64,000 nucleotides of DNA, taken from positions 372,001-436,000 of the forward strand of contig JAIVFI010000005.1 of assembly GCA_025558095.1 (NCBI GenBank). Reading direction: 5' to 3'. This DNA comes from Hyaloraphidium curvatum SAG 235-1. Its lineage: Eukaryota; Fungi; Monoblepharomycota. Made by a program: the position numbers and the translations under genes. Shown here piece after piece: positions 8,614 to 53,613 of the stretch. Under the pieces are notes generated by a model. It saw only the letters and a list, made by a program, of their open reading frames with translations, ran no database searches and had not been told where the DNA came from. Positions within the stretch are counted from its first letter, which is position 1; each line of letters begins with the position of its first letter.

Positions 8614-8685
8614 ACGGCGATCATGTCCACCGTCGTGTAGTCTCATCAAGTGTTCCATCAATACACTCGTTCAGGAGACAGTGAG

Positions 8686-8868: not shown

Positions 8869-9071
8869 TTTAGCTCCTCCATCGTGATCTCAAGCTAACG
8901 AGCATCCTATCAGCGAAGCGTCGATCCGCAGCGCACGGAGGATTGGGGGATCGATCGTGCCCTTTCGAACCCGCCGCAGCCAGCCGCAGCGGAGCGGCAA
9001 CCTCTCCCCGAACGCAACGCCCCATTCATTCGTGCTGACGGCGCATCGCGGCTCGGAAGAGCAACATCGCA

Positions 9072-10291: not shown

Positions 10292-10451
10292 CCCACATGA
10301 CTCAAGCGTGCGTTTTGGAATAATGGGAGTGAGGCTATTCGTCGAAGCTGCATAGACGGCTAGAAGGCGAGGACATATCTGCGTCACCACTGTTACACTC
10401 TGTCGAGATCATGGGCGGGATCCGCATGCATTTGAATACAAGATCGCGCGT

Positions 10452-14318: not shown

Positions 14319-14484
14319 CTTTGGAGTGGGCTTGAAGTCCCGCGCAAGCCCGGCCGCCCGACTCGAACACCCGCACGCCTCTCACGATCGGCACGGCAAC
14401 GACGATCGGCACGGCAAAGAACATGCATTGACACCGAAAAAGAGCTACACCCCATACAAAGATCTCCGGCGCGCGCGCGCCCGT

Positions 14485-30654: not shown

Positions 30655-31757
30655 TCAAAGAGCCAATAGGCCCAGCAGAGACTGCTTCAGCTGATCCTGG
30701 GTCTTGGAGTCCTAAAGCATGGGAGGTCAGAAAAGCCGACGTCCAAAAGGCAGCAAAGACCCACCTTGGTAAGGGCACTGGCGGATGCCTTGTAGCTGGC
30801 AATTTCTCTGGAAATCTGCTGGTTGAAAGCACCGAGCTCCGCCTGCTGCGAAAGCTCTGCGGGGAGAATAAGCAGAGTCCGACAAGGTGGTTACGTCGAC
30901 CAACGGAGTTCGGCGGCTTCTTTCTCGAAAGCCCTGGCGATCTTGACGCTGGCGGTGTAGTTGCGATCCAAGCTTTCCAGTACGGCGAGGGCCACGGTCT
31001 GTCGGCATTTGCATCAGGGACGCGAAGTCATCTGACCAGCGATCCTACCTGGAATTTGTCAAAGTCGTGCTTGAGGCGAGCCACGTGCTGCGAAGAATCG
31101 TCTTCCAGCTCGTCGAACTTGCGCTTGAGGGTGGCGACGTTGTCGTCTCTGCCGAAGGCGTGCTTGTAACGAGGCGGCAAGATCGACAAGTGTTCGCGCC
31201 GCCCACATTCCGGACTCGATCGCCTGGGTGACGGTGTTGAACACCTCGATCACTTTGCAGATCTTTTCCGTGATCTCCTTGTCCATGCGCTGCTGCCTTT
31301 CCGCGCTCTTCTTCTTGAACAAAGTCTTCAGACTTCCAAGGAGCAGCGCGGCATCCTTGTCGCCCCTATTGTGGGCGCGTTGTGCATATAGAATACCGGC
31401 GGAAAACGAACGACCCGCGCAGAAAGCCAATTGGTCATTCGACGGTTCGAGGACCGAAACGCGTCCGCGAAAGGTGACGTACCCGAAAGCCAGCGCGCCC
31501 AACCCTCCGGTGAGATCCATGCCTTCGTCCTTGTCCGCGCGCGCTTCGTCGTAAAGGTCTCCGGTATCGAGCTCTTGGTTCGGCGGCATGGTTTTCCTGC
31601 GGCGCGGTTCGGCCAAGAGCGCCTCCTTCCCGGGCTCCGCCTTCCGGCTCAAGGACGTGGGCAGCGCGGCGGCCGGCCGCGTCCGCGTGACGCGTTCCGT
31701 CGCGGGCACAATCCTGTCGGCCGCCACGCCCCTCGTGACTTTGGCGTCGCCGGCCAT
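30655..31757 (-). CDS. Coiled-coil protein, SYCP3/Cor1-like paralog A
   Basis: Spliced ...DAALLLGSLKTLFKKKSAERQQRMDKE...FDKFQ^TVALAV...ARAFEKEAAEL^QLSQQ...REIASYK...TK^DSKTQDQLKQSLLGLLAL*. Confidence 0.6.
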
Positions 31758-31890
31758 GGTGCGAGGTAGACTGGTGTGGCACCGCGATCCTCGACCGTCC
31801 GATCGCGGACGAAACTCAACTATCGACAACAGAGATCAACTACAATTAGCATTTGTATTTGAACGGAATAGAACGGTCCGAGCGCAAGAA

Positions 31891-32736
31891 CTAATAGGGA
31901 CCGGAATAGTAGCCACGGCCGCGGCCCCTGCGTCCAAGCTGGTGAGCACGGGACATGACTGGAAAAGCGATCCGACGCCTCACCTGTATCCGCCACGTCC
32001 ACGGTAGCCTCCATCGTAGTATCCTCCGCGACCACGATAACCTCCTCTGTAACCCCCGCGACCTCGGCCCCGGCCGCGCGTCATGTGCGGGACATTTGTC
32101 CGCTTCGGAGTCACCTGATCGAGACAGCTTGTCAGCAGGGCAAACGAAAACAAAAGCTCGTGCTACCTGCCTTGAGCATCCTGTTCTTAAAGATCGTGTC
32201 GTTGAGGACCATTGCCCCTGCCACCGCCGTCTGGTCGGCAAACTCGATGTACGCGTAGCCCTTCGGGTGGCCGGTGTACTTGTCGCACAAGATGGTCACG
32301 CGATTGATGGTTCCGCAGGCCTTGAAGTGCTCCTGCAGCTCCTCGGGCGTCGAGCTGTAGTCGACGTTCCCGACAAAGATTGATCTGCCGTCGACCTCCT
32401 CCTTCGACTCTGCAAGCCCTCGTCAGACACTTGAAGATTGGGCACAAAGGCAAAACCAACCCTGCGTGGCGCCGGCAGGGTAGAGGTCGTTCTCGACCTC
32501 GCTCTGCATTTTGCGCAGCTTCTCCGCCTCCTCGTCCATCTGGGCAATCCGCTGCTTTAGCTCCTCAATTGACTGCACGTCCAGAGGTGCAAAAAGACGA
32601 GGCGAGGCGTTGAACGTCAGAAAAAGTCGCTCTGAACCGCGGTTGGGGCACCTGCCTTGTCGTCCATGTCCTGGTCGCCTCCCCCAGCCGCGGCATTCTC
32701 CTCCACCGCCGACGCGGCGTGCTCCTCGTCCGCCAT
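31891..32736 (-). CDS. PABPN1: Nuclear poly(A)-binding protein 2 (PABPN1/Pab2)
   Basis: Coiled coil [21 protein letters not shown]; [47 protein letters not shown]; RG-rich tail ending YSGPY. Confidence 0.93.
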
Positions 32737-33190
32737 GTGGATCTATATCTGAGTCGCATTTTGCGCGAAAGGACGCCATCGTGTGGTCGACGAGGTGACG
32801 AAGTGCAACGCGGGGGTTAACCGCGTCCCAGGGGGCCGTGCCACCGCTGCAGCGGGACGGGAGCGTCAGAACTGACTCACATGCAGCGAAGCGGCTCCGG
32901 TCGCTCTTTTTCTTTCTTTCTTTTCTTCGGTTCGGTGGCCTTTCTGTCATTTTATGGCTCTTGTCAAGTTCTTTCTCCAATGATATACGAGCGCGCCGGC
33001 TGCCCCATCGCTGCATGCTACATCCGGCGAGCGAGGCCGCTGCTGTACATACCGGCTACAAGGCCGCCGTGACGAGGAAGTGGGTGGGGGTAGGGGTGTC
33101 CCCGACGGGCACTTAGGCGGTGATCGAGATCGACGCTTCGTCCGCTGTTGACGCTCGCGACCTCGCCACTTTCCTTGAAGCCGCACCGCA

Positions 33191-34654
33191 ATGTCGAGCT
33201 TCGGGAACATCTATCGGGCCCACACGTTCGGCGAATCGCACTGCAAAGCCGTCGGCGTCGTGGTCGATGGGGTTCCGCCCGGCTTGCCGCTCACCGAGGC
33301 GGACATCCAGCCGATGCTTAGCCGCAGGCGGCCTGGACAGAGCAAGCTTACCACTCCGGTGCGTTTGGTCGCCGGGAGCCTTCATGAAGACCTCGGCTTA
33401 GCCTTTGCTCCGGAACAGCGCGATGAGAAGGACCAGGTCGTCATCCTCTCGGGCACGGAGATGGGCGTCACTCTGGGAACGCCCATCGCAATGATGGTCA
33501 ACAACCTGGACCAACGGCCCCACGACTACTCGGAGATGGACCAGTACCCGCGTCCGTCGCACGCGGATTACACCTACCTCCTGAAGTACGGCGTCAAAGC
33601 GAGCAGCGGTGGCGGGCGTTCCTCGGCAAGAGAGACGATCGGTGGGCCTGATTCTGCCCGGTGTACCGCTGTTTCAGCTGACGACGGTCGTACAGGTCGT
33701 GTGGCAGCCGCTGCGGTCGCCGAAAAGTACCTGAAACTGGTCCACAACATCGAGGTGGTGGGGTTTGTGGGCTCCGTCGGCAGTGTCTCGGTCTACCGTC
33801 CGGAGGCCTTTGATCCCGACTCGACGAACGAGGAGCAGTTCCTCGAGAAATGGCATGAGTGGTGGAAGGTGCTTGCGACTGTGCAGCGCGAAGACGTGGA
33901 CAAGAGCGACGTGCGGTGTCCGATCCCCGAGTACGCGGACAAGATGAGAGAGGTGCGTCCTTTTGCCTTTCCGCTCGGAACTTTGGCTAATCCGGTTGCG
34001 TTTTGTAGCGTATAGTGAAGGCCAAGGAGGCGAACGACTCGATCGGAGGCACGGTGGTGTGCGTGATCCGGAACCTGCCCGTCGGACTCGGCGAGCCGGC
34101 CTTTGAGAAGCTGGAGGCCAAGCTGGCCCAGGCCATGCTCTCGATTCCCGCGACGAAGGGCTTCGAAGTCGGCTCCGGCTTTGCCGGCACGGACGTTCCC
34201 GGTCACCTGCACAACGACCCCTTCGTGAAGAAGGCGGACGGCTCGCTGGGCACCAAGACGAACTTCTCTGGCGGCATTCAGGGCGGGATCTCGAACGGGG
34301 AGCACGTCTACTTCCGCGTCGCCTTCAAACCGCCGGCGACGATCGGCAAGGCGCAACCGACGGCCAGCTTCACGGGGACCGACGGTGTTCTGGAGGCGAA
34401 GGGCCGGCACGACCCCTGCGTTTTGCCCCGGGCGGTCCCGATCGTGGAGAGCATGGCATTGCTCGCGATCATGGAGTAAGTTCCGCGGGGCTGCTTTGGG
34501 GATTCGATCTAAGCGACTGGTGTTCCGCAGCGCATTGATGGAGCAACTCTCGAGGCAGGCTGCGCGCTCTCTTATCCCGCAATCCGTCACCGACGCTTTG
34601 CCGCCGCGGCTTACGGGCAAGGCGGCCGTTCCGAATGGAGAAGGAAAGCATTAA
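33191..34654 (+). CDS. ARO2: Chorismate synthase
   Basis: [52 protein letters not shown]. Confidence 0.97.
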
Positions 34655-34702
34655 ATTTTGTCTGTACATGCTACAACTAGAAAGCATCACTCTGAGTCTC
34701 GT

Positions 34703-36638
34703 TCACCGCCCACGGTACCCTCCTCTCGGTGCACCGGCGTATCCGCCTCGCTGCGGGGGAGGGCCACTGTAGGAAGGCTGCTGCGGGGGAGGTTGGCCGG
34801 GGTAGAACTGCTGCCCCTGGGGCGGAATGGCACTCGGATACCCGGGGGGCCCGGCCTGGGGCACAGGAGGGTACCCCGGCGCCGCACCGGGAGGACCGGG
34901 CGGCTTCTGACCCGCCATGGAGCCGCTGAGCATGGACAGCAACGAGCTGACGTCCGCCGACTGTGGCGGCACACCGTACCCAGGCTGCATCGGGGGCTGA
35001 CCGGGCATCTGCATCGCGGGCCCTCCGGCGGGCATCTGAGGCACTCCGTAACCGGCAACCGGCGGGCGAGCGGGCGGGGCACCGCCCTGGATGGCTCCGA
35101 GAAGGTTCGACAGCGCGTTGAAGTCCAGGTTCGGAGGGGGGAGGGCGCCGGGGTTGGACGCGAGGGGGACCACGGGTTTGGGTGGGTATGCGGCGGGGGG
35201 AGGGACGGCCATGCCGACGGCGTTCTTCTGCATGCGGACGTCGGCCACGGCCTTGTCCAGACCGACCCGGTCGTACTCTGTGGCGGGAGGCCTGTCAGAC
35301 CCGAAAACAAACCGCATGAGTTCCCGAAACCCACCGACGTATCCAGTGCTGCCGTCAAAGATGAGCATGGTCACGGTTTCGGTGGCGTCGAAGCCACGTT
35401 CGACGAAAACGACCGCACGGACTCCTTCGTAGTTCATTTGCTGCAGGACGAGCTCGAGCGAGAGTTTCGCCGACAGGAACAGAACCTCCACGTGCATGCC
35501 AGCGCCGCGGAACCTGTTCTCGACGTGCAGAACGTACTGCCTGCAGGGGGCGGGCCAAGGTCAAGATGTACGATGGAGGGCAGCGAGACAGCAACCCACT
35601 TGTCGACCTGGCCGATCACGATGACCTGCACTTCGGGAACGTTGGTACCGTACCTGCGCGGAAGCAGGAAGTCCGATGTGCTGATGGGGATGTCCAGGCG
35701 AAGCCTTCCTCCGAGGATGGACATGAGCGGGGAGTCGTTCCTCCCGGGCGGCCCGCCGCGCGAGTAGGGCGGGGAGTAGGATCTGCGCCTCTCCGGACTG
35801 TAGCTATCGCCCCGGTTCCGGCCCCGCGTGCGCTCCCGGGAATCGTACGGACGGTCCCTGGCATCCCTCCTGTCCGAACCGCGGTAGGGACCGAAGCCGC
35901 GCGGGGGCTCGCGGTCCCGGCCGAAAGTCTCGCGCATGGCACGGTCGCGCTCCTGTTCGGCGCGACGCTCCCTCCGGTTCTTTGCGACGGAAAGATCTGG
36001 CACGGAGCGGGCGTCAGGACGAGTTTGGGAGAATACACGGAGCAGATCTGCCCACCGAGCTTGAGGCCGGCCAGCAGGCGGCCGTTCTCCATGCGGATGG
36101 CCTCGAGGACGGACTCGGCATTGTCGTACTGGATGAAGCCGTACGAGTCCTTGATGACGATCTCGTAGACGTCCCCGTACTGGGCAAAGATGCGGGCCAT
36201 CTCCTCCCTGCGATGCGGACTGTGAGCGGGGCGGGGCACGCACGGGACGTCCACGCACTTGCTGGTCTTCTCGGAGGCCAGGTTGCCGACGAACAGGCGG
36301 CTGTCGTTTGGCAGCGAGAACATGACCGAGTTGGGCGACGTGAAGTGCACCTTGTGGTGCGGATTGAAGCGGTACTCGTCGCCGTCTGCGTCCTGCTGGC
36401 CGAACGACGGGCCGGGCGCGGCGGAGGGGTCGTAGAACGGCGCGGCGCCGGGGAATGCGGGCGGGTAGGCGGCGGCGTGGGCGGGCGCGTGGGGCGGCTG
36501 CGCGGCCAGCGCCATCGGCGGCGTCGGCGCGGCGGCGGACGGGGGCGACGCGGAAGGCGGCGACGGCTGCGCGGCCGCGGACGGCTGCTCCGACAGCAGC
36601 TGCAGGATGCCCTCGACGCCGGGCGCCTCGTCGGCCAT
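34703..36638 (-). CDS. RRM RNA-binding protein with NCOA5/Nab3-like domain and Pro/Gln tail
   Basis: SRLFVGNLASE, FAQYG.V.EIVIKDSYGFIQY; LPRRYGTNVPEVQVIV; QMNYEGVRAVVFV. Confidence 0.8.
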
Positions 36639-36821
36639 GGATGGGCGCGCTACTCCGGAACGCTCGACGCCGGCGACTGCGGGGCAGGGGGCGATGTGAG
36701 TGAACGCGTGTTCTCTTTTTTGCGACCTGGTGAGCGCAGCTGCCGGCGCCTAGTGGTGAGAAACCCCTGCTGATCACAGCCTTCTGGACTTCGATCAAGG
36801 TAAGCGTGCGAGGATCCAGCT

Positions 36822-38995
36822 CTATTCGGCCTTTGGACGAGCCGGTTCCCCGGCGGGCGGCAGATCCGGGCTTTCGCCCCCCTGATCTGCCCCACCCTCA
36901 TCGCCCCCTGGCTTGGCGTCCGTCTTCCACAGCCCGGTCTCCTCGAGCGCCTTTACGTACTCTTTGGGCACCGGCACCACCACGGGCTTGAACTTGCGCG
37001 TCAGCAGGTTGAACAGGCTCCCGAAGTAGAGCGCGAACAGCGTGCACGTCATCGTGATCACGTTGTAGGGCATGGAAAAGTCGGGCGTCGGCAGCGCGAC
37101 GAGGATGTTCTCGGACCAGAACCTCCGCGGCTCCGGGCCGAGCACCGTGACGGCGCAGCCGGCCACGTCGAAGCCCCGGTTGGCGTCCGGGGGGTGCTCG
37201 GTGTAGCGCAGGTGCGCGCGCTCGAAGCCGATCTCCACAAAGGTGGTAGTGTTGGCGGGGAGGAGGAGGAGGAGTTCGAGGGAGGCCGGGCGCTCGCGGT
37301 CGCGCGCGGGGAGGTAGTAGATGCGCTGGAGAAGCCCTGGGTGCCACGAGATCGCGCGTCACGGGCCGCAAGACTTGGGTGCCGATCGCAGCAACACACC
37401 TTGGCGCTTCTCGCCTTCGTTCCACACCTGCATCGTGTGGAGGAACATCCGCATCCACCATGGGAGCGCGTCGAAAAGAGCCACGCTAAGGTTCCCGGAC
37501 GTCGGGTTCTCGAGCCGCGTGAGCACCCTCCCGGACTGCAGCCCGTATCCACCGAGGAAGCGGTGCACGTGCAGCGGCGACGGATCATCCAGGCCCACGG
37601 GAAGCGAGCGGTCGAACGCGGAGCCCACGCTGTCCATGTGCGGTAACGCTGGAGGCGGCGGGTCAGCAATAATCCAGGCCAAGTACCCCGGCAGACCACC
37701 CACGGTCCCGCAGATGGTACACCACCGTCCTCCCCGCCGGCGCGGGCCTGTCCTCGCCCTCCACTGCCGGGGGCGCCGGCAGCTGCAGATCGATGCGGCT
37801 CTCCCCGGCCACGGCGCACGGCACGGTGACCTCCCGCTGGAAAAGTCCGGACACCGTCCAGGACGCGGAGTCCATGAGGCGGACGGGGTCCATCACAAGG
37901 GTCATGGATTGGGTGGCGATCATTTCCTCGTAGGGGAACGAAGCGGTCTGCGGCCGCGGGTGAGTCAAGGTCGTCACCGAAAGCAGAGGCACCCACGGCA
38001 GGGCTCCGGTACAGGTCCACCGACATGGAATGGTAGTTGGCATCGTAGATGCGGTAGGGGTTGAGGAGTTGAGATAGGCCCGCCTGGAACGAAGTCGGTC
38101 GAGGAGCCAAAGTGCCGGCGGCGGCGCCCCACCTTTGCCTTGCACGGCAGCATCTTGATCCATGGGGTCAGGTTCTCCGTGCAGGTCGCCTCGCGAGGAA
38201 GGGCAGCAACGCGCAAACGCGTCGCTTGGCAAATCGTCAGCTTCGTTGGACCTCTTGGAGGGGAAGCCCGCCCACCGTTGCCCCGCCCTCCCAGCGGCCG
38301 AAAGCTCAGGGTCGGCTCGGCGGTGTTTTTCGAGTCGATAAAGTTGAGCGAGGCGCAAAAGATGCCCGAAAGCGTGTTGGCCAGGCTCCGCCACCGCTCG
38401 TCGACGCTGGCCGGGGCGGGGACCGGTCGGACGGCGTCCTCACGCGCCCGAGGCAACCACCCACTCATCGTCGCCCTCGAACCACGTCCACAGGTGGACC
38501 CCGGTGGGTCCGGTGGACTGTGGCTGCGCCCCCCACGCCTTGTGGTTCCACCGTCCCTGGGTGAAGGTGAGGTGCCACTCGGAGACGCGCAGCAGCTGGG
38601 TGACGTGGCCGACGGTCCGCGGGAACGCGCCGTAGTGGTTCTCTGCACGTCGCGGAGGGGATGAAGTCGCCGTTGTGCGGTCCCGGGATCGGTGAGGCGC
38701 GTTTGGAGAGATCGCGGCGGGGGAGCCCACCCATCGCGCCCTTCCGGGGAGGAGGGTACCGGAAGCGCGTCGTGAAATTGAATTCGGCCAGCACCATGCC
38801 GCTCGGCAGCGTGCGGAGGCGGAGCACCTCGTCCGACGCGGTGACGCGGGCGGAGGGACGTGGGGAGGCGGCAACAGGGAGGGAGGCCGCGGCACCCAGC
38901 AGGAGCAGCAGGGCGGGCCATGCGAGTGTCCAAAGGGATGCGGAGGACGCATAGCACGGGAAACAGGCCGGCGCTGCCCTCCGGCGCTTCCGCAT
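36822..38995 (-). CDS. GPI16: GPI transamidase subunit PIG-T/Gpi16
   Basis: [73 protein letters not shown]. Confidence 0.95.
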
Positions 38996-39130
38996 CGCTG
39001 CTGCGGGGTACCGGCAGGAAATGGTATCAGGAGTTTAGCGGGGGAAGAACGAGGCCATTTCCCGGGTCTGCTGGTTGAATTGTCGAGACCAATCAACACC
39101 ACCCGAATTCCTGCGACCCTGAGGAGCGCC

Positions 39131-41175
39131 ATGACTGCGCGGCGGTCGCACGGGCGGCCGAGCCGCGCGTCGGACGCGCGCGCGTCGGCGGGCGGCGACT
39201 TCGAGTTCGCGGCGCCGCGGTACCACGACTTCGACGACGGCGGCGACGACGACGGCGCCGACGAGTGGTTCGACACGCGCGCCGCCTCGCCGCCAGAGGG
39301 CGCGCCGCGCGCCGCAATGGACATCGACGACGACGGCGGCGACGACGGCGGCGACGGCGACGGCTGGGGAGACGGCGGCAACGGGGAGGGCGGCGGCGAC
39401 GGGGCCGACTCCGGGAGGCGCTCGTCGGCACGCTCCCTGCGCTCGCGCCCCTCGCACCCCAGGCCGCTGCCCGCGCAGCGCTCGATGCCCGCGCGCAGGG
39501 CGCCCACCGGCGTGGCACCCGCACCGGCCGCACCCGCGCTCGCCGCAAAGGAGCCGTACCAGGCAAAGAAGCTCACCGTGCCGAAGGAGTTCCGCTTCCA
39601 GAGCGAGGCCCGCGCGGCAAAGGCGCCCGCTGCGAAGCGGGTGTCGCGGCCGCACCCGGGTGCAAAGGGCGGCGGCGTGCAGGTGGGGTGTCCCGCTCCC
39701 GCGTCCAGCACATCCCTCACACGCACGACCCGCAGAAAAAGGTCCAGCCGGGGAAGGAGGGCCGCAAGCAAGCCCAGCAAAAGACCACCCTCACCGTCCC
39801 CAAGCCATTCCAGTTCCAGACGGCCTTCAAGGCCCTGGCCAAGGAGGCCGAGGTCCCCGTCAAGTCGCCCTTTGTGCCTCTCGCCGTCAAGGTCAAGCAG
39901 TTTGAGCAGTCCTCCCCCGTGGCGAAGCGGACGCGGACAAAGGTACGCCGCAAGTGCATCGGCGAGTGTCGTTGATTAACGTTCGGCGCTCCGCAGCAAC
40001 TCATGAAGGCGGCGTCGCCCAAACTGACCAACCCGCGGTCGCCGCGCCTGCTCACCAAGCTCCGCACCAAGCCCACCCACATCCCTACGGCGGAGGAGCG
40101 CGAGCTCGCCGAGATCGGTCCCCGATTCCGTGCACACCCCGTCAACCACGCGGTGCGCCTTTCCCGCAGCTTCCCATCCCCGCACTAACATTGGTTCGCC
40201 CGCCCAGGTCCTCGTCGGACCCAACCCCGTCACCAAGCGATCGAGACCCACGCTCACCATCCCCCAATCTCCTGCGATCCACAAGCCCCGCCCGCCCGCT
40301 CCCCGCCCTCCCAGCCCCCCGCGCGTGATCCGCGCAAACCCGATCCCCGACGTCGCCCCCTTCGAGCCCCAGCTACCTCGCCGCGCGGTTCTCCCCGCGG
40401 ACTTTGAGCTCCCCGGCGACGAAATCAGCAGGCGCAAGCGGGAAGAAGCCGAAGCCGAACGGCGGCGCCAGTCTGAGGAGGCGAGGAAGGCCAGGCGGTT
40501 CGTCGCCAGGGCCCTGCCCGACGACGAGGTTCCCGAGGTGAGCGTCGTCAGCACATGTCTACTGCATGCACAGCCGGGCAGGCAGGCTCATTTGCACGCA
40601 GCCGCTTCCCCCGGTCGAAACCAAGCCCCTCACCTATCCCGAGGCGTTCCAGCTCAGCACGGACGCCCGCGGGGAGGAGCACCAGCGCCGGCTGCGCGAG
40701 CAGCTGGAGAAGGAGAAGCGGGAGAAGGAGAACCGCACCCGCTTCCGCGCGCGGCCGTTCCGCGAGGTGGAGCCGTTCGTGCCCGCCAAATCGGCCAGGC
40801 CGGCGACGGAGCCCGAAGCCGTGGTGCTGCACAGCGACCTGCGCGCCGAGGAGAGGCGGGCGTTCGAGGAGGCGCAGAAGGAGAGGGAGCGGATGGCGGA
40901 GGAGCTGAGGAAGAGGCAGGAGATGGAGATGGAGGTCGGTGCGTCCTTGTCTGCATGCCGCGATCGCCAACGATTTCCTTCGCTTGCAGGAAAGGGAGAA
41001 GGCGGAGATCCGGGAGCTGCGTCGCCGGGCCGTGCACCGCGCCGAGCCGATCCGCAGCTACGCACCCGTGGTGGTCAAGCCGTCCAACAAGCCGCTGACG
41101 GATGCCGAATCGCCCATGATCGGAGAGAAGCGGAGGAGGGCGGCGCAGGCGCAGAACGTGTCGGCATCCAACTGA
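39131..41175 (+). CDS. TPX2: TPX2-like spindle assembly factor
   Basis: N-terminal FEFAAPRYHDF...ADEWFD; repeated LTVPKEF.F, LTVPKPFQF, FRAHP, FRARP, LT.PE.F.L.T; C-terminal EIRELRRRAVHRAEPI...KPLTDAESP. Confidence 0.8.
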
Positions 41176-41279
41176 ACCTTCAGGCGAGACCTTGTGTATT
41201 CAATCTTCTTGTTGCAGTTTTCTACATTCTTCTCCATGCAAAAGCGTGTGTCTCCTCTGCCGCCGCGTCTCCAAGAGCT

Positions 41280-41965: not shown

Positions 41966-44132
41966 CAACGCGCGGTGCTCGAGGTTGGTCGAGGTCTGCA
42001 CGGCGGGGTGGTCAGGCGGACGGAACGGGGGCGACAGACTGGGCGGCAGTACGCACGGTCTTGGACGCCACCGCGTTGAAAGGCTGCTCGCGGTGGATAG
42101 ACCCGGGCTGCCTCTCGTCCATGCCGAAGTAGGGGAGCTCCTTGCGGCTGGGCACCGGCTCCACTCCGTCACCGCCCTGGTTTAGAGGCAGCGCGTCAGC
42201 TTCGACGGAGCTCGAGAACGGGGATACTCACCACCGGGTTGCTGGCAAAGTAGAGCCGCAGGAACGAGTCGAGCTCGCGGTCGCGGTGCAGGTACGGATC
42301 GAGCTTGTGGCCTTGCTTCACGCCGAGCTGCTCAGCGATGCCGCCGATGCCCTTCTTCTCGTAGATCCGGCGGACGTCGCCGATGGTCTGCATCGCCGAC
42401 AGAGACAGCAAGTACTCAAGAAGCGACCAGAGCGGCGACACGTTGCCGAAGCCGTTACGGAAGAGCTCGAGCACGTACTGAAGAGGATGTCCGTCTGGCA
42501 AACGATGCAGCAGAGCGCGCGCGCAGACACCCACCGAGACGGGAGGAGGGCCCACGGGCTCCGGCTCCAGGCGGCTCCCGGGGAGCTGCGCGGCAACCCG
42601 CCTGTAGTCGTCGGCCGAGATCAGCAGCTGTGGTCCAGATGTGCCGAAGTCGCTCTGTGCGGACTTCCGTGAGCAGGGACTTGCTAGCGGCAAGCATGGC
42701 GAAGCCAACCTTGATGAAGATGGCGCCGAGCTCGGTCCAGCCGGGAAGCACTCGGGCGTTCGGTTGCGCCCGGAACGCCGCAAAAAGCCGCACATCCCGC
42801 GCGGTGTTCTGGTCGATCTCGAGGCCCTTTCCGTGCGCCCAATCGAGAAGGCCGAAGTAGAGCCTCCGGCCTAGTTCGTATGCATGGTACTTGAGGGTCT
42901 CCAGACCGAGTACGGGATCGCCAGCACCCAAACGGAGCAAATGCGCCTGAACAGTCGCAGGAGTAGAGAAGCCCATCAAATTGCAGAGGCCATGGCAAAC
43001 GAGGTGCACCCCAACTTCTTCCAGCCGGCTGTCCATGTAAAGCTTGTCCGCAAACGCTTCCCATTCGTGAAGACCCGCTGACGGCAGGTGCCGACGCCCC
43101 AGCACAATGGCCTGGTCCGCGACGGTCTGAGCAGCGGCGCCCACGTCCGCGTCGGCCGCCGGGATGTCGCGGGGCTCAGCGGCCTGTGCCGTCGGCTGAC
43201 CATACGTTAGGCCGGCCAGCTCTCGGTCACGTACGGCCTTGACCAGGTCGGCGCTGCCTATGCCGTAGCGCTCCCGTGTCTCCCCGACAATACGCCGGAT
43301 GAGCTCGCGCTGCACAGGGGGACAGCAGTGAGCCAAATGCGCAGTCGTCTGCGCACTCCCGGAACTTACGTGGAGGCAGTACAGCATGAGGTTGTCGACC
43401 AGGGGGTTGGCATTGTGAGTTGTTCCCCCGATCTCGTTCGTGAGAAGTACCCTGACGTCCTTGTCCTTGAAGACGTCGGCGAGCTTGCCCTCTGCCAGAA
43501 GCAGCTCGCGCACGCCCTTGAGGCCGAGGCTGGCGAACTTCTCGAGCAGATCTGCTACCGACTCGAACACCTCGTCCGCGCGTGCGAAGAGCTTGCGGCG
43601 GTCCTCGGGATCGCGGATCGCCTGCACCGCATGCTTGAATAGATCCGACGGTTTCTGAGCGCGGCGGAAGAGTGTCAGCCTCGGTTGTGGTCCGCCGATG
43701 GAAGTTCACCACCTCAGGGTTGCTCAAAGGAGGCCTCCTGAACGCGTAAGGCTCGTTCAAGTCGACGCCGCCCTGGAGGAACCGTTCCCTTCCGGGATCC
43801 GTCCTGCTCGGCCCGGCGGATGGTGGCTGCTGGAGAGCGGCCGGCGATGCTGGCCGTGCGACGAGGGACGCGGCCGGTGGGACGAGTGGCGCGACGCCGC
43901 CGCGGCCCCGTCCCCGCGGCTGCGTAGCACCTCGCTGGGCGGCCGGCTGGGGGTTAGCAGATCCGCCGCGTCCGCCTCTGGGCGCGGCAGCGGCAGGTGC
44001 GGCCGGCGGAGCCGAGGCGGGCGCGCCCGCGGCCCCGCCTCCGCGGGAGGCCCCTCCGCGGCCGCCGCCACGCCCTCCGCCGCGGCCACGTCCGCCGCGT
44101 TGAGATCCGGCGCTCGCCGCGCCGCGAGTCAT
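41966..44132 (-). CDS. Orphan spliced protein with RGG-rich N-terminus and helical body
   Basis: MTRG...RGGRGRGGGRGG; canonical introns (about 43660-43715, 43310-43368, 42655-42710, 42180-42230) link the frames; no recognised domain. Confidence 0.55.
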
Positions 44133-47100
44133 GGCTGATGGGCGCTGGCGTCCTCGCACGCGACGCGTTCTCGCCGAAGTGATGAAGGGCCGAACACACA
44201 CGGCCCGCCTAACCCAAGGCCACGCGTCCAGACGCGTCCAAAAGCCCTTCGCAGTTTCCGTTCCAAACAGCTCCACAGCAGCCTGCCGCTCGGCTCGCTC
44301 TCCCTATTTGCCAGGGGTTCACCAGCCCGAGCTGATTGACCGGGGGTGCCGGCAACCTCGCCACGCTCGGACCGGCGAGCGGGATCGGACTCCCGCGTCC
44401 CCGCGAAAGCTCCCGCACCGAAACGTAGAGGCTGGGAGATTGAACGCCAAGGAACTCGCGCTCGATTTCGTTCTTCTTTCGATTCGGCCTCCTGCTGCGA
44501 GGGGATTCTGGCCAGACCTTCGCGGCATCGTCCTCGCGCCGGCGGATGCCAGCGCGGCTCCAGACACCCGCGGGCAAAACATGTTTGCTTTTGAGCTCGA
44601 GGGAAGGATAGCCGCGACCACAGGGCCTCCGGTGCTTCGGCGAGGCGAGACGGTCAAGCAACCAACCGATGCGGTGCAGGTCCTCAGCATTGGCCCCTGA
44701 GCGACTGAAATCCTCTTGGAATCGTTTTTCCTCGCGACATACTGGGAGCTAGGCCACCTTTCTGCGGAATGCCTGCGGTGGCAGGTCGCGGAAGGAAGTT
44801 CCATGGTTCGACTGTACCACGGAGCTTCGGCCGTCGTATCGGCGGTGATCGGGCGCAACAAGGAGCCGCGCCGTCGGCATCGCCTTCCACGATGCGTTTG
44901 GCACCGTCTAGGTGCCATTTCAACGGGGATGCGTTTGCAGGTTGAGGTGCTTCGTGAGCGTTTCCGTGGGGGCGGTCTCTCGGCAAAGTCAAACATCAGA
45001 AGTCGCCGGTTTCCGATCTCTTCATGTACGGCCCGGCCAATGCATCTGGAGAAACTAACATGGGCCCATACTTCGGTCATATTGTCTTCAAAACCCCCCG
45101 TGGCCCGAGGAGCGTCGTCCCATTCCGATCTGACCGGTGGACGCCAACATCAAGCGATAGCACGTCAACGGCCGACTGTTGCACCTTCGAACCGCGTCCA
45201 TGTGACGCCTAGAGCACGTATGGCAGAGAGACTGTATAGATACGCAGGTTCCTTGCGTCGTATCTTCCGGATGACGCCCGGAGAGGGCAGGAAAAATCCG
45301 CAAGCGGCTCAGAAAGACGTGCTTCAGGATACCACCTCAAGCATGCAATGCAAGCATCATACGATCCGCGTTCCAGACTTATATGGTCACGATCGTCGCA
45401 AGAGTGGGTCGAAGGGACCGTAGCCCAGTCCGCAGCTCCCCGGTGGCCTCCCCGGCGCCCCATGCCTGACCTCTCGATTGCAGGTCGAGCGTGGCAAAAA
45501 TCGTCCTCCTTTGCTTCCGCATCACCATTACCGGACTTCATTACGTGATTTGCTATCGCGGGCCCCGCGAATTTGGTGGCCGGTGAGCCGGACGCTTGAT
45601 GTTGCTGGACAAGAGTCAAATGGAGCTTGGCCTCCTGCGGGCCCCATCGCTTCGCCGTTCTAACTTTCCAAGTCCATCATCCGCCGAGATTGGCCGGCTT
45701 CGGCGCGTTCCGGGTACTGCGGGACCGTCCTCGTGTGTGAGCTGCTGCGCCTGCGAAAAGAATCCGCGATACGACAAATTTTGTTCCATTGCCAACCGTC
45801 GCGCATCCCACAACCCCTGGCCTCTCGCGACGTCTTTGAGCCCCGGAAAGCGTGGTTCTGCCCAAGATCAGCTCCCTGCTTGCGCTGCTGGTCGCCGTCT
45901 GGGGCTGCTCTGCAGCCGCATCGCGACACGGGGGAACATGGTCTGGGGCGTGGCATCACGGCACGGCGTCGCACCCCTCATGGCGGCAGCCCGGGACCAC
46001 GTCGAACAGGACCTTGTGCTTGCCATCCGCCTTGAGCACGCACGAGACGTCCTAACTGGCGGAGAACCGAGGGTTCAGAATACCCGAAGCACGCCATTGC
46101 CGAGCAGGCACCGAGGCGCGGCGATCGCCTCGACCACTCCAGTGGTCTTCATCCCGCGCGAGTGTACGCAGAGCAAGTTATACACCTCTACAGCGGTTTC
46201 TTGCCCTTCGAGCTCGAGAAACCCCCACAGGATTGATGATGCAGGCGCTTGACCGTTTTGGCTGGCAGCATTCCCTGCCCTCATCCACCGCCAACTCAAT
46301 CGATACATCCATTCCGACATCCCCGATACAATATAGCACCCAAAAACTCGTGATAACCGGGCGGACATGGTCGGAAACGTGCTGTACCTTGCCCAGTCGT
46401 TTGTTCCATCACGGAAAGTCGCACATCCGGATGATCCCTGCAGATACATGCACTAGCAGTACAAGCAGTACACGCTTGTTTACTGTCATTGCCCGGACTT
46501 GCAGAATGGATCTCAATCTCCATAGCTTTTGCCGTTCGGCCGGGCAACTCCGACCCTCCCCGAAGCATGGAGTACGTACTTCCATGCTGGGTAGATCTAC
46601 AATGGCGATAGTCAGCCAAAATGCTGTTACAGACATGCTGTATCTTTTTCGGGGCCCGTGGTGGCCGCAGCTTCTCACTTTCGGCTTGTCAAGTCGTTTC
46701 CGGTCCAACTCGCGCAATTCTCGCCGCCTGCGCGCCCCTCGGCAGAAGCGGGTTCCGCTTCAGCAAACTGCATTGTGCTGCGGTCATCCTGCGTTGGTAA
46801 CCGAATCTGCATTGCATTTCCCTCGCCATGATGCTTCATGCGTCACTGTCAGGGACTACGCCACCCTGGAAGGTTCTGAGGCTTTCCCGGACTCTTCCTG
46901 GCTCCGCCACACGCACCTACGCCTCACGCTGGCGCGGACCGGACTATATAAACCGATAGATCTTTGCCTGTACAACCCGAACGTTCGGATAGAGTTACAA
47001 GCCCCGTACTCCGTCTCCCCGTTCTCCCGATCCCGCAGGCCAGGACCGGCCTCCCACGGCCTCTCCTGACAGTCACGCATTTTGCCACACGGCTCGAACC

Positions 47101-47499
47101 CGTTCCCGTCTGCGCCGTTACGTGCATCAGACCTGGACAAGGCCTCCCGATGCTCGATTCTGCTGTACCGTTATGTGGACGGTCCACCTCAATGGAGGGA
47201 ATGATGGCAGGTGGCATGATCAGGCGAGGAAAACTCAAATTGTGGTTCAGAAATCCGAGCTACCGTCCCATCTATGCGTCTTGCTTGGTGCTGCACGCCT
47301 CCTTCGATTGCGTTGTAGGCACTCGGTTGATGATTTCTTCACGTTCAATGCGGCTGGAAGCAAACTCTGGGGCATGTCAAGACTCTGGTAACGTTGCCTA
47401 CGAGAGGCGGAATTGGAGGCCATGAATACGGCACTTAACGACAAGGAAGCCAGGAATCAGTCCCAACATGGATCATAATGGCGCATAAAAATGGCTTTC

Positions 47500-47644
47500 T
47501 GAACCGAAGCATCAGTGCTCCAGTGTCTGTGCCGATAGCGAGAGTCAGCTTACCCTTCCACTTTGCAACATTCACGGCATCGATCACAATGACGAGCTTA
47601 GCATCCACGTTTCCGACGGCTTCGGCTATCAGCGTAGGTTTCAT
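47500..47644 (-). mobile_element. Possible decayed Mutator (MULE) transposase fragment
   Basis: LVIVIDAVNVAKWKGKLTLAIGTD resembles the MULE first-Asp motif (VI.IDGT.L..KYKG.LL.A.G.D); the rest is disrupted. Confidence 0.3.
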
Positions 47645-47999
47645 GGCTCAACAGCTTCCCTCCCCAGCATGAGCAGGGAGATGCCGACTGTGACCTAGGT
47701 CGAATCAAGATCTCGCCATGGATCGCACCAGCACGTGACAAGTCGCGTGCCTCCTGCCACCGGCAATGGCAGTTTCAACAAGCCGTTTTGCTGTGCGTGA
47801 TCATCCTCGTCCAATAGACTGACGAGCTCCATGATCGCCGCGAGGAGGGGGGCTCAGTCTTCAAGCTGATGGAGTCAGGCATGGCCCTGTGCTGCGAAAT
47901 TTGATTCAGCAGACCGAGAATTCCTATCTGAAACGACGGTGGCGGCGCCTCGCTTTGACCCAGGCACAGGTGAGAAAAGGGTTAGTTGACTTTGTCCTC

Positions 48000-48200
48000 G
48001 GGCGGTCCACGAGTGGTCCACGAGGACGTTCCCCGGCCCACGTCTATCGCTTCTGGTCCACGGCCACTGTTGACGGTCTACCATATGCACGAGTGGCCTA
48101 CGCCGGGGTTTTCTGGTCTGCCAAACCTGAAGCGGTCCACGACTGCGCGAACAGTTCACGGAAACTTGAGCGGTCCACGACTGGGCGAACGGTTCACGGA
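48000..48200. repeat. GGTCCACG motif cluster and 38-bp-period direct repeat just downstream of the transposase
   Basis: agcggtccacgactgcgcgaacagttcacgga (48131-48162) and agcggtccacgactgggcgaacggttcacgga (48169-48200); further ggtccacg copies near 48004, 48015 and 48055. Confidence 0.8.
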
Positions 48201-48269
48201 TACCCCAAATTGTCTACGGCGATGCGCAGGTGGTTCACCGCCGCTGTTTCCGACTCGTATCAGCATGTT

Positions 48270-50720
48270 TCACGCGGAACCGACATTTCGCCGACCCCAC
48301 GGGGCATCTACGGCCGCTGCCGCGCGCTCTACGGTGCTCCAGAGGGCGGCAAGGAGTTGGGGGCCGAGCTTCGCCCCGCGCGGACCGGAGCGGCAGGACT
48401 TGGGAAGCCGGAGATATCCTTCAAACTGCCGCCGGCCCCGCTCGTTGAGGCTGCTCAGGAAGCGCACGGCCGGGTCGCCCGAATCGTGCGAGTAGCCACA
48501 CAGTGCCGCCGCACGAACAAAGCGATCCGCGACCATTGCGATCTTGGCGCCAACTGATGTGCGGACGAGTCGCAAGACTGCCCGGAGGGACGGCCAGGCC
48601 GCATAGCGCCCGTCTGACGCCCACGGCGGGGTGCGTGCGCCCGAGGCGTCGGCCGCCCAGTGATCGGACCACTTGTACCTGAGCCTTTCGATGAAGCACC
48701 GGGTTCTTTGCATCTCTGGGCTGGCCGCGAGCTGTTCGCTGCTCATTAAGGAGAATTGGCGCACGGCGGGTGCGCAGTAGCCGGCCGCAGCATCCACGAG
48801 GTCGGAACAGAACTCAATCCAAGCCTCGTCGCCTCCCGCGACGAGATGACGGACAAGCGCCTGCAGCCTGGCATCGAACGTTTCCGTCGAGTTCATGCCG
48901 TCGAGCTCCGCGGGGGCAAAGTAGGAAATGCAGAGGTCGCGCAGGACGGCCGCCAGCTGCGGCCCGAGACTGTGCGTAAAGGCCACGCGGAGATGGTTCA
49001 GGTCGGGCACTTCCGGATCGGAATCCACACATCCCTCCTGCCGCTGATGGATGTCCCGAGAACCTTGCGACTCTTCTTGCCCGGACGCCCACGTTCGGTG
49101 TGGCCCCAGCAGCAGGTAGCCCCTCTCGTCGCAGTAGGCTCGCGGCAACTCCAGCACGAAGGCCCTGTAGCAATCTACGGCAAAGCGGATGCGCTGGGGT
49201 GCCCTTGACCGCTTGTCTGGACGGCTGCTGACAGGCTTGCCCTCCACCAGGTAGGAGCAGAACCGGTCGAGATGCTTCTCCGAAATCAGAGCCAGCCGGC
49301 GCAGCACGTTCCCATCCGGCGCGATGTGGGCATCGATGAGGGCGCGGCGGAACCTCCCCATCCACGGGTTTCGGCCCAGCTTGATCACATCCGTCACCAA
49401 CCAGGCGAGGTCGAGTTCGCGGGGCAAGGAGCGGAACGAGTCACAGATCCCCACAACAGCAGCCGCATGAAAGAAGGGAGAAGCGACGCAAGGACATTGC
49501 GACGCTAAAGTAGGTGCAAGCGACCCCGAGATGGGAGCTGTGTCGGCATCGGCATGCCGTTCAGGCCCCGCAAAGTCGGCCGCTGCGGCAACGAGGCGGA
49601 CATCCGACGAAGGAACAGGCAATGTGCCCAAAGAAAGGAGCCCTTCGGCGGCAACAAGCCGGGTGTATTCGGCCGCGCTGGCCTTGAAACAGTGATGGAA
49701 AATCTTCGAAAGATCCATGTCCGCGACCGCATCCACTGCGCGCTTGATCGAGGCGATGAGCTCCTCCTGCGTGGACGGGCAATCGGCCCTCACGCGGTGC
49801 TTTGTCATGGCAAAGAAGATCTCTGCGGGATTGAACTGCGGCGACTGGGGCCTCATGTAGGCGAGCGAAAGGTTGTTGGCGGAAGCCACCTCCCTTACCG
49901 CCTTGAACGACTTGGTGTTGGAGCAGTCGCGGTAAGTGACGGTGCCGTCGCGGGCCTTGCGCTTCAGCAGTGGCGGTCCGTGGAACCCGGCATTGTCAGC
50001 AATCACCGTCAGGGGCGCCGCCGCCCTTTCAGCGCCGCTCTCGCTGCTGTTTACCGTCCTGAGGAAGCTCACGAACCGATCGTTGTCCGTGGTTCCGTTG
50101 TGGATGATGTAGGACACCACGCAGCCTCGGTAGTTGCCAGGCCTGGGCACGGCAGAGATGCACACCGCAAGCGTCGTCTTGGTGCCCCTGTGCAGCGGTC
50201 TCTCGACGACTGCTTCGTCGCCCTTGCGCGCGTAGCCGTACCTGGGCCCATCGTTCAGGTAGAACCCCGACTCGTCCAGCGCGGCCCTGTTGGCTGGCTC
50301 GCTAGCGAGAATCTGCTCGTGGAAAGCAATGTGCCTCTCCGGCTGCGCCGCGGCCTCGGAGCTGACGTATCTGACCTTCTTCCGCACGATGCCCTGCCTC
50401 CGCAGCACCGTGGAGACGTGCTGCTGAGTGACGGGCACACCGAACCTGGTTTCAAAGTCCTTCGCCAGTCTCGCCTGGGTGACCGTCACGCGCTCCAGGG
50501 CCTCCTTGGCCAACCATGCGGCTCGTTCAGGAGTGACTTTAGAGCTGGCCGGCGCCCGGCGGGGCTCCTTTTCCTGCGTGACAGCGGCTGCTTCGGCCTG
50601 CCAGCGGAACAGGGTGCTGCGATTGATGCCAAAGAAACTGCAGATGTTCGGGACGGGGATTTCGAGCCCGTTCTTCATGCCGAGGGCAACTTCCCGACGG
50701 TCTACGAGATGCCGGGTCAT
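48270..50720 (-). mobile_element. IS630/Tc1-mariner DDE transposase with long C-terminal extension (816 aa, intronless)
   Basis: HTH (ICSFFGINRSTLFRW), winged helix (VTQQHVSTVLRRQGIVRKK), ALDESGF, IADNAGFH, MRPQSPQFNPAEIFFAMTK. Confidence 0.9.
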
Positions 50721-51393
50721 CGAGGGAGTTTTCTCTAGTCAGCGCGTGGTCTTCTGAGATGACATAAACAACCACTACCTAAACTAAAACAAGACCCGGA
50801 CATGGGAGCCGAATCGAGCGCCAAAGTCGACGGGAATACTACCGGCGATGAACAGAGGAGGAGATACGTGGTCTCCAAGTTTGGAGCGCACGGCTACGAG
50901 ACGGGCGCGGCGATGGTGAAGCCGCACCGCTGTCGCGACTACGCGCGGGACCTTGGGGAGGGCTTCAGCTCCGGAGACATGTGGGGACCCTTTTCCGCGC
51001 TCGTTCGATGCCTTTGGTCGAGCCCAGGGTGAGCCACGTTTGCGTTGTCGCCCTCGAGCTCGAGCGTTTACGCGAGACCGTTCCATCCCGTTCACCTCAG
51101 ACTGGAACCTCCACGCCATCAGTTCTCGCCAGCTAACGTCAGCTCTCCATCGGCTGACGACAAAAAGTCCAAGGATTAGCTCGCTGGCCTTTCCGTTTCT
51201 GCTACTCGGAGGAACGCGACTGACTTTCGGACGCGTGTCGAATCGACGATGCCATCGATATTCTGCCTGTTGTGCTATAAGATCTGCCTCTTTGGTGTGC
51301 AAAGGGTCAGGATGGCTACGGATATCGTCAACTCCTGCCAGATACGCTCCATCGGTGCTGGAACACAGCGCTCTTGGCAAGGTCGCGAGATGT

Positions 51394-52314
51394 TCAGACA
51401 CCGAGCGCCGTGATGAACACTGATTTGAGAGTGTTGTAATCCTTGGTATCCTGCAACCGTGTTTCAGACACGTCGGACGGAGCAGGCGTCTCGAGACGAA
51501 CCTTCGTGGAAGCCGCAACCTCCTGCCGGGCCACGTTGAGCTGCTTCTTCATCACCTTCAACGCCTCGATAGCTTCAGCTTGTTGTGTGTTTTCTGTACG
51601 GCGGAGAAATTGGCCATGAGCTGTCGAGCGCTTTTGTATCGACTTTGTTGCACGAACGGAGGTTGTCGAACGAAGAAAAGAACGAATGCTTAACCTTCCC
51701 CACGTTCTTGAAACCGGTGTCGAATTTGGTTATCATGGAAACCGTCGTGTCCTGCGAGATGGCAACGTAGCGCGAATCGTGAGTCCGATCAGGTTCTTCG
51801 GAAGATCGCAAACCCACGAGCGACTTTTCGATTCCAGCCTTGAGCTTCTTCAACTGAGCACCGGATTCCTCGATTTGCCCTTCGAAGTCTCGCTTGGTGT
51901 TCTCCAACCTGTCCTGCCTCTTGGCCATCTCCAGCCCAAGGGCGTCGCGGGCCTCCTTCGCCTTCTTTTCCAGCTGCTGAACGTGCTCCGATTCGGCGCG
52001 CTTGGCGCGATCGGTGTTCTTCTTCTTGAACTGGGCTGCGCGACGTTCCCAACCGTCGAGTGAATCAGCCGGGGAGGACGGTCCGTACGCCCAGTCCGCG
52101 CACCGGAAACGAGTCCGAGAATCTTCTTGAGGCTCTCGCCGTCTTCGTGGTCCGAGTTGTCGTCCGGAGGCGCCTCGAAACCGTCCTCGATGTCCTCTGG
52201 GGGCGCCGCGATTCCAGACGTGATCTCCCGCGCGGGCGGGACGCGACGCAGCTTACCAGTCAGAACCTGCCTCCCGGCGGCTTGCCTGCCCTTTTGCTGC
52301 TTTCCGCCAGCCAT
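51394..52314 (-). CDS. Coiled-coil protein, SYCP3/Cor1-like paralog B
   Basis: Spliced ...GESLKKILGLVS^AQFKKKNTDRAKRAESE...IEKSL^DTTVSM...KHSFFSSFDNL^QNTQQ...ARQE^DTKDYNTLKSVFITALGV*. Confidence 0.6.
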
Positions 52315-52478
52315 GGTTCTGGCGCTTTGGTGTGCGCGGTTGTCCACTGTGGAGGCAGAGATCGATCATGCGTCACCGCCCAACGGACCGCCGATCTAAT
52401 AGAGGAAGCACGGGACCGCATATATGCTAATTTGTACATGATTCTTAACCTGGTATCGTTTTGAATAGAATTCAGGGC

Positions 52479-53613
52479 TCATAGATCCGAAGCGAGGGTC
52501 GCCCGCTTGCGAGGCTTCGCCGTGTCATCGGTCAGCAGATCCGCCAACGCCTCCTGCAATTTCGGATGTTAAATAGCGCCAGAAAGTGCTCGGAGAGAAG
52601 TTCGCACCTGCAGAGGGTTCGACTTCCGCTTCTTCGCGTTGGTGGCTTCTTCCTTGGCATCCGCTTTGGCTTCGCGATCCGCGTTCCGATCCCCGGCGCG
52701 AGCTGTAGTTTGCCTCTTCTGCTCATCCAGAGAGTCCGCGATGAACGTATGCTCCTTCAGAATGCCTGGAGCGACGCATCGTTAGACGACAGCGAGTGTT
52801 GCTAGCACGAAACTTGCTTTTCACGGTGCCTGCGAACGACATTCGAATCATTCATGAGACACACGATCAATGCCCACGAAAGAAAACGTACTCTGTACGC
52901 CCTTCTGGAAATCGGAGTCAACCTTCTTCAAGCTTTGCGTTGCTTTGCCGAGGCCCTTGACTGCGTTTTCGCTGACGATCTGGTTCAAGACGATCGGATC
53001 AATCGGAAACGAACAGGAGAGCAGGCAAAGGGCTTGCATTGAACTTGTCGCTCTCCGTCTTGAGCTTCTGCAGCAGACCCATGCGCTCGCTGGGCATAAT
53101 GAAGCTCGATCAGTGGAAGCTCTCATCGCCCCGTCGCGTCCTTACTCGAAAAGCTCTTCCATCTTCGTCTGGAACTCGGAGATCTTCGTTGTAACCTCCC
53201 TCTCGTGCTTCTCCGTGATCTGTACCGCCAGGACTTGAATGTTGTTCAAGACCTGTAACATCGCGGTTCCAGAGGCGTCAGTTTCGTTCCTTCACGCCGC
53301 GCAGTCCGACGTCAACTGTCCAACCTTGTCGCATTCAATCTTGAGCTTCGCTGCCTTCTCGGCCTGGTTCTTGGAGACGCGTGCTGCGGAGAAGAAGTCG
53401 CCGCGGAAAGCACAGGAGGGGACGCGGAGCTCCGCGTCAGCCGCGCGGGAGTGAAAGATTCGCCCCGTTCCCGACGGGCGCTGCCGTTTCCGAACGCGTT
53501 CTTTACCTTGGAGCGTGGCCAGGATTTCGTTGAGGCCGTCGTCCCTGCGATCGGAATCAACGGTTCAGGAGGTTCCCCGGTCCGCGCGGCCGCGCGGTCT
53601 CCTACCCCGCCAT
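52479..53613 (-). CDS. Coiled-coil protein, SYCP3/Cor1-like paralog C
   Basis: Spliced MAG^DDGLNEILATLQ^ARVSKNQAEKAAKLKIECDK^VLNNI...SDKFN^IVSENAV...DSDFQKGVQ^STVK^SILKEH...NPLQ^EALADLL...; two GC-AG introns; 12-nt exon 52818-52829. Confidence 0.55.

Follow-up and report, generated by a model that had tools for sequence, protein, structure and literature searches.

Whether chytrid-grade fungi build the meiotic chromosome axis from dedicated coiled-coil proteins is the question raised by a stretch of Hyaloraphidium curvatum SAG 235-1 DNA (GenBank assembly GCA_025558095.1, contig JAIVFI010000005.1, positions 372,001 to 436,000). This 64-kb stretch, referred to herein as the window, has a G+C content of 64% and carries three multi-exon genes on its minus strand, A, B and C, which the original prediction, made from the sequence alone, took for an expanded family of SYCP3-like meiotic axis proteins. 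Hyaloraphidium is known only to reproduce asexually, and no sexual cycle has been described; to our knowledge, axis and synaptonemal-complex proteins have gone unrecognised in most early-diverging fungi, owing to their fast evolution. We find that A, B and C are genuine genes, conserved and paralogous to one another, and we tentatively read them as a fast-evolving, lineage-restricted family of SYCP3-type axis-core proteins, an assignment to which we give somewhat less than even weight.

A, B and C are spliced genes encoding paralogous coiled-coil proteins

ATG-to-stop models were assembled from lists of minus-strand GT or GC donors and AG acceptors, and canonical splice sites yielded complete open reading frames for all three genes, with introns of 48-126 nt:

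30655-31757, minus strand: gene A, 258 aa, 6 exons (31757-31483, 31365-31207, 31148-31049, 30998-30905, 30856-30765, 30711-30655); splice model
51394-52314, minus strand: gene B, 203 aa, 6 exons (52314-52257, 52196-52104, 52035-51818, 51751-51658, 51593-51502, 51450-51394); model equal to public protein KAI9030400.1
52479-53613, minus strand: gene C, 198 aa, 9 exons (53613-53606, 53544-53507, 53383-53325, 53252-53146, 53089-53038, 52979-52892, 52829-52818, 52765-52608, 52553-52479); splice model and RNA

The coordinates given for A, B and C in the original prediction proved exact, and the peptides that it quoted are all present in the minus-strand frames. Its splice models missed two features, an intron near the 5' end of B and a micro-exon of C. 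The former, an additional phase-1 intron at 52197-52256, is found both in RNA and in the public model, KAI9030400.1 (P0001), a hypothetical protein of H. curvatum that agrees with our B model letter for letter. The latter, at 52829-52818 on the minus strand, is 12 nt long, uses a GC donor and was seen in an RNA contig; when the acceptor at 52829 was used without the micro-exon donor, stop codons resulted. The GC-AG intron 52980-53037 of C was likewise confirmed by RNA.

No public protein was found for A in a word search of a 5.8-billion-protein set with its open frame, and the gene appears to be unannotated. For the junction between exons 2 and 3 of A we took the one that aligns the protein with B without gaps and agrees with A', the ortholog on contig L007 described below; the alternative junction, 31245/31162, spoils the gapless alignment and conflicts with A'. 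The A product is predicted to begin with a disordered tail of 91 aa that carries a basic cluster and to continue as a helix-rich stretch of ~167 aa. The C product is without an N-terminal tail, and its charged C-terminal tail holds two basic clusters.

Paralogy was assessed by comparing local Smith-Waterman scores with those of 500 shuffles. A and B aligned over ~180 residues with a single gap, located in the disordered tail (z=11.8), and A and C were also related (z=6.4). As the score of B against C was not significant (z=1.1), the kinship of these two is transitive only. Gene structure ties the family together as well. In A, B, C and their three orthologs the 24th codon after a phase-0 intron encodes Phe, and neither F24 nor K19 varies in a 31-column exon alignment of these six sequences. 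B and C have in common a phase-1 intron within the N-terminal motif, while A and B share a phase-1 L^Q intron that lies in the Gln codon, exons of identical length (31+1, 30 and 18 codons) and a conserved hydrophobic octapeptide that closes both proteins. Basic clusters mark the start of the helical rod in all six sequences, in addition to those in the N-tail of A and the C-tail of C. The claim of three paralogous coiled-coil genes is thus borne out by the A-B and A-C scores and by common intron positions and phases, and each of the intron correspondences originally proposed, together with the matching last exons of A and B, holds. Searches of the genome's own proteins with a stop-free piece of B and with exon 2 of A retrieved only the queries themselves, in a search that was blind even to the paralogs.

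The family is conserved and fast-evolving in a second species

A HMMER search of 1.84 billion proteins with the stop-free B piece, consisting of an exon, an in-frame intron and the next exon, gave three matches. Besides KAI9030400.1, these were two prokaryote-style gene calls that translate straight across introns; one lies on L007, a 96.8-kb Logan contig of 53% G+C from a related species. When the A, B and C models were compared with this contig by tblastn, one ortholog of each was found (A', B' and C'). All intron positions are kept in the orthologs, including those of the C micro-exon, with the sole exception of the last A intron, which is absent from A'. The micro-exon has a 12-nt counterpart in C' (L007 8731-8742, minus strand) that sits at the same place and encodes a similar tetrapeptide. 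Exon lengths are equal or differ by one codon, and those of B and B' are identical, although the introns of these two genes differ in length and sequence. Separately, C' seems to have a GC donor at another intron (L007, about 9285).

In a tree of the six sequences the B pair and the C pair each formed a clade (support 99/99 and 93/93, respectively); the A pair was left unresolved, with both A rows outside the B and C clades. This topology is consistent with one-to-one orthology of A, B and C. Since the ortholog pairs are 38-42% identical (B and B', 42%) versus 71% for the adjoining exon of a UbiA prenyltransferase gene, the family is conserved but fast-evolving. Axis and synaptonemal-complex proteins typically evolve at such speed. 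No further relatives were detected with KAI9030400.1, which in a word search of 5.8 billion proteins at E<=10 retrieved only itself, nor in metagenome contigs scanned with a three-sequence B-family profile.

Rod length, a language-model lead and the meiotic gene set point to a possible axis-core family

AlphaFold2 predicted that residues 1-37 of B are disordered and are followed by helices at 38-183 and 190-201, with a mean predicted local distance difference test score of 77 and values >90 over residues 70-140. The modelled rod (38-201) would thus comprise ~164 residues and extend ~24 nm, ending in a short, conserved, hydrophobic C-terminal helix; for A and C, the architecture was read from their gapless alignment to B. 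The axis-core unit of SYCP2:SYCP3 and ASY3:ASY4 filaments measures 23 nm, or ~160-175 residues, with ASY4 being 212 aa long (PMC6349405), and the core of SYCP3 spans residues 66-230 (PMC6833220). The length of the predicted B rod matches that of this axis-core unit.

A protein-language-model search with full-length B provided a further lead. Among named clusters, SYCP3/XLR/Cor1 took ranks 1-3 (scores 0.86-0.85; 174-175 of 256 features shared). At ranks 4 and 7 came clusters of plant proteins, 222-265 aa long, labelled 'meiosis-specific ASY3-like', and all but one of the ten top named matches fall in a single family or clan.

The genome also encodes meiotic genes and some of their relatives:

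G000 C24:292136-292959: Hop1-like HORMAD gene; HORMAD1 is its best solved relative
C35:65637-65708: Spo11
C36:207541-208291: Dmc1, distinct from Rad51
C23:317444-318398: Rad51
C2:482663-482908: Rev7-like HORMA gene, assigned by eye
C33:278078-278230: Mad2-like HORMA gene, assigned by eye

The A/B/C family therefore co-occurs in this genome with a meiotic HORMAD of the Hop1 type. Among the meiotic genes to which the original prediction looked, the Hop1-like HORMAD, Spo11 and Dmc1 are present, but Red1/SYCP2 was not found by six-frame profiles, a search of low power.

Profile and fold searches do not tie the family to known axis proteins

The results of this section, together with the transcripts described in the next, weigh against an axis-core assignment. 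An hmmscan of full-length B against Pfam at E<=10 listed 12 weak coiled-coil families, among which neither Cor1 (PF04803) nor ASY3-like (PF20435) appeared. The best of these matches, DUF1664 (E=0.003), is far under the family's cut-off; a match to Mer2 (E=0.077) was taken as coiled-coil noise. Spliced A and C were searched exon by exon, and the exons of A, B and C compared individually with Pfam gave nothing relevant, with neither Cor1 nor ASY3-like among the results. Six-frame translations of the 31.9-Mb genome yielded no match to the Cor1 and ASY3-like profiles, and no SYCP2- or Red1-type partner with the SYCP2_ARLD, SYCP2_SLD, Red1 and ASY3-like profiles, in searches of low power whose controls were silent. 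Likewise, phmmer and profile searches of the PDB with B, the A exon of the N-terminal motif, the C-terminal exon of A' and the three-sequence B profile did not retrieve SYCP3, the B-family profile giving noise only. The profile kinship to Cor1, SYCP2, ASY3-like or Red1 that the original prediction envisaged therefore failed to appear for full-length B, the exons of A and C, or the six-frame genome. B has the coiled-coil-only make-up of SYCP2-3 family members, and in the Pfam and PDB searches it showed no significant similarity to any axis protein.

Comparisons of fold were equally generic. SYCP3 chain 4cpc_A superposed on the B model over its full length with a Z of 8.0, tied with ~50 other rods, and tropomyosin, lamin, NudEL, ROCK and axonemal rods reached the same Z in this shape search; Foldseek of B against the PDB returned no match. 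Judged from the model, fold searches cannot separate the B rod from any other long helix, and the structural resemblance to SYCP3 that had been anticipated dissolved into generic long helices, with SYCP3 not retrieved from the PDB by sequence or profile. A complex prediction with four copies of B residues 38-203 scored 0.00 and carries no weight either way. The language-model match falls under both marks of the tool (score 0.9, recognition 2300), B scoring below 0.9 with a recognition of 2268, which by the tool's own calibration makes it a lead only, or weak evidence. The signal needs the whole of B, as a 125-aa piece retrieved generic coiled coils only, and it may mirror composition and layout rather than descent.

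These results raise the possibility that A, B and C are unrelated, lineage-specific nuclear coiled-coil rods, for instance of a mitotic chromosome, kinetochore, spindle-pole or nuclear scaffold, with length, composition and a common layout of tail and long helix as the sole grounds of their resemblance to SYCP3 and ASY4. We regard this as a serious contender, doubtful in our judgement but well within reach of the data: no profile or sequence method ties the family to any axis protein, the language-model match lies under the tool's own trust marks, and other long helices attain the same shape Z as SYCP3. Set against this, the nearest of all named clusters are animal SYCP3/Cor1 and plant ASY3-like, representing the two characterised coiled-coil-only axis families and two kingdoms, and not the far commoner cytoskeletal coiled coils. 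The rod length fits the axis-core unit, and no other family matches better, DUF1664 being the best that Pfam offers.

A heptamer upstream of two of the genes bears on the same question:

31891-31897, plus strand: CTAATAG, 134 nt upstream of the A start codon
52396-52402, plus strand: CTAATAG, 82 nt upstream of the B start codon, between C and B

These are the only two copies in the 64-kb window, versus 0.67 expected by chance. Neither the upstream regions of the orthologs nor the Hop1, Spo11, Dmc1 and Rad51 loci contain CTAATAG, and we rejected it as a common meiotic promoter element on these grounds; that a motif of A and B is missing at Hop1, Spo11 and Dmc1 is a further point in favour of rods unconnected with the axis. 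Each copy of the heptamer lies near a CGGTCCC on the gene strand. In the second species, A' and B' have a 10-mer, ACGCGATCCG, in common, placed ~70 nt ahead of each start codon:

L007 about 9710-9720, plus strand: ACGCGATCCG
L007 about 14935-14945, minus strand: ACGCGATCCG

This 10-mer resembles an MluI-box, and a related sequence, CGCGATCGG, is found upstream of A in the window.

How the lack of profile matches is to be read depends on the history of the SYCP2-3 family. SYCP3 is inferred to have originated within Metazoa from the SYCP2 coiled coil, and coiled-coil-only 'SYCP3-type' genes arose repeatedly (SYCP3, KKT16, ASY4 and ASY4L), with Rec27 related to Rec10; SYCP2-3 family genes have been reported in the chytrid Spizellomyces, and fungal coiled coils are too divergent to align (PMC8131943). 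Given this metazoan origin of SYCP3 in the literature, A, B and C are unlikely to be true SYCP3 orthologs. Because such genes have arisen repeatedly and fungal coiled coils cannot be aligned, it is plausible that an SYCP3-type family originated independently here, in a way to which simple profile searches would be blind. An independently arisen SYCP3-type protein is therefore the tenable form of the earlier claim: the conserved trio and the meiotic toolkit are upheld, the language-model lead and the rod length speak for it, and the expected profile or PDB match did not appear.

Transcripts confirm the splicing of C and retain most introns of B

One RNA run contains the B-C region. Its database record is uncertain ('RNA?'); we took the run as RNA because its contigs bear canonical splice joints. 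Such contigs give no expression levels, and rarer isoforms drop out of them. Every one of the eight C junctions is present in RNA contig 2, those of the micro-exon and of the GC-AG intron among them; the contig also shows the first B intron (52197-52256) spliced, the only B intron so confirmed. B introns 52036-52103, 51594-51657 and 51451-51501 are retained in RNA contigs, as is the 3' end of 51752-51817; retention of 52036-52103 occurs in contig 2, the very contig that confirms the C junctions, and contig 1 spans B exons 4-6 with their introns unspliced. RNA thus upheld the proposed splice models at every C junction and at the first intron of B, but the other four B introns appear unspliced in the contigs. 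Since these four are retained, a mature B mRNA is not demonstrated by RNA, and the B introns rest on comparison with the ortholog and on the identical public model.

Contig 2 is also unbroken over the intergenic stretch between C and B (52315-52478), a coverage that may reflect either C transcripts running into B or overlapping untranslated regions. Beyond the 3' end of B lies a small plus-strand gene:

50802-51180, plus strand: small gene of ~100 aa; RNA contig extends to 51778

The product of this gene had no Pfam match. RNA bears out its intron, 51028-51099 (plus strand), and no contig depth in the region exceeds that of this gene (344). The contig that runs from it, unspliced, through the last three exons of B represents antisense RNA to B or, alternatively, a merger with B RNA that is itself unspliced.

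These transcripts admit a reading in which B is a gene in decay, or one whose translation differs from the model, so that only A and C function and the coverage of B comes mainly from read-through of C and from antisense RNA of the strongly expressed plus-strand gene at 50802. Four of the five B introns being unspliced, contig 2 continuing from C into B and contig 1, with its plus-strand GT..AG joint, overlying B exons 4-6 all accord with it. We consider it very improbable, as the B reading frame is intact over six exons, B' retains every exon length and 42% identity despite diverged introns, and the public gene model is identical; contigs lose rarer isoforms, so that a spliced form need not be absent.

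The same run contains fully spliced C and part of B at ~1/10 of the contig depth of their neighbours. If it derives from a vegetative culture, the presence of C and B speaks against strictly meiotic expression, and the fully spliced C transcript adds to the case for rods of some other nuclear structure. It would also suit proteins that are SYCP3-type by descent or architecture but non-meiotic, like KKT16-18 of trypanosome kinetochores, for example a filament that bridges DNA in vegetative cells or in cells forming autospores. SYCP2-3 genes have been repurposed after duplication elsewhere (PMC8131943), the only public RNA run holds spliced C RNA and B RNA, and selection has preserved all three paralogs in both species. 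We judge this unlikely nonetheless, given that the stage of the RNA sample is not known and contig depth is no measure of expression. As the intact Spo11, Dmc1 and Hop1-like genes make cryptic meiosis plausible, a meiotic role needs no repurposing.

Relationship to known axis systems and a possible mechanism

Metazoan SYCP3 (PF04803; 4CPC), a lateral-element protein, is similar in build. It is of comparable size (~236-254 aa versus 203-258 aa), and it shares with the family described here a disordered N-tail, a near-continuous helix of ~165 residues, a basic rod start and a short C-terminal tail. Unlike SYCP3, B has no Cor1 match at E<=10 and no sequence match to 4CPC, and the family consists of three paralogs without an identified SYCP2-type partner. 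ASY4 of plants is also a coiled-coil-only axis protein, of 212 aa, that forms 2:2 tetramers with ASY3 and filaments of 23-nm periodicity (PMC6349405), and the ASY3-like family (PF20435) is represented by the 222-265-aa clusters at language-model ranks 4 and 7 for B. In contrast to the ASY3/ASY4 pair, the present family has no PF20435 match and no long ASY3-like partner that we could find.

Rec27, Rec25 and Mug20 of fission yeast, to which the family had been likened, are three small coiled-coil proteins that act with the Rec10 axis core and Hop1. They are shorter, at ~130-150 aa, and we know of no demonstration that they are paralogs of one another; A, B and C clearly are paralogs, and the likeness is by description only. 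Rec27 has been classed as SYCP3-type (PMC8131943). The kinetoplastid kinetochore protein KKT16, compared by description only, arose by duplication within the SYCP2-3 family, of which it is one of the coiled-coil-only proteins, and works outside meiosis (PMC8131943).

Under the axis-core reading that we favour, the A, B and C rods would pack as antiparallel homo- or hetero-tetramers, as in SYCP3, SYCP2:SYCP3 and ASY3:ASY4. The tails may join the tetramers end to end as filaments, the basic clusters may bind DNA, and the filaments, together with the Hop1-like HORMAD and cohesin, would build the meiotic chromosome axis. The family would have arisen independently of metazoan SYCP3.

A more specific scheme, which we consider distinctly improbable and offer as speculation, is that A, B and C make up a minimal axis core without an ARM-PH protein of the SYCP2/Red1 type. 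The conserved basic-hydrophobic N-tail of A would then supply the Hop1 closure motif, B and C would be SYCP3/ASY4-like co-polymerising rods, and the whole would be an independently evolved three-subunit filament, an analogue of linear elements, in which B is perhaps switched on by regulated splicing, given the retention of four of its five introns in the RNA at hand.

Genomic arrangement

The neighbourhood of A provides a synteny anchor:

30074-30616, plus strand: last exon of a UbiA prenyltransferase gene (Pfam UbiA, E=1e-29), convergent with A

UbiA adjoins A in the window and A' on L007, where C' (minus strand), B' (plus), UbiA (plus), an unidentified gene and A' (minus) follow one another within 6.5 kb (8346-14873). 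B' and C' are head to head on L007, and B and C are in tandem in the window, where they lie 20 kb from A, with a transposase at 48270-50720 beside B. The arrangement of the window compared with that of L007 suggests a rearrangement or insertion.

Significance

Should A, B and C turn out to be unrelated to the axis, they would represent an ordinary lineage-specific coiled-coil family, useful mainly for the correction of gene models, namely that of A and the micro-exon of C. If the axis-core reading is true, the family would provide a handle on how the meiotic axis is constructed in chytrid-grade fungi and would add one more to the independent origins of coiled-coil-only axis proteins. Alongside the intact Spo11, Dmc1 and Hop1-like genes, it would then be a pointer to cryptic meiosis in Hyaloraphidium.

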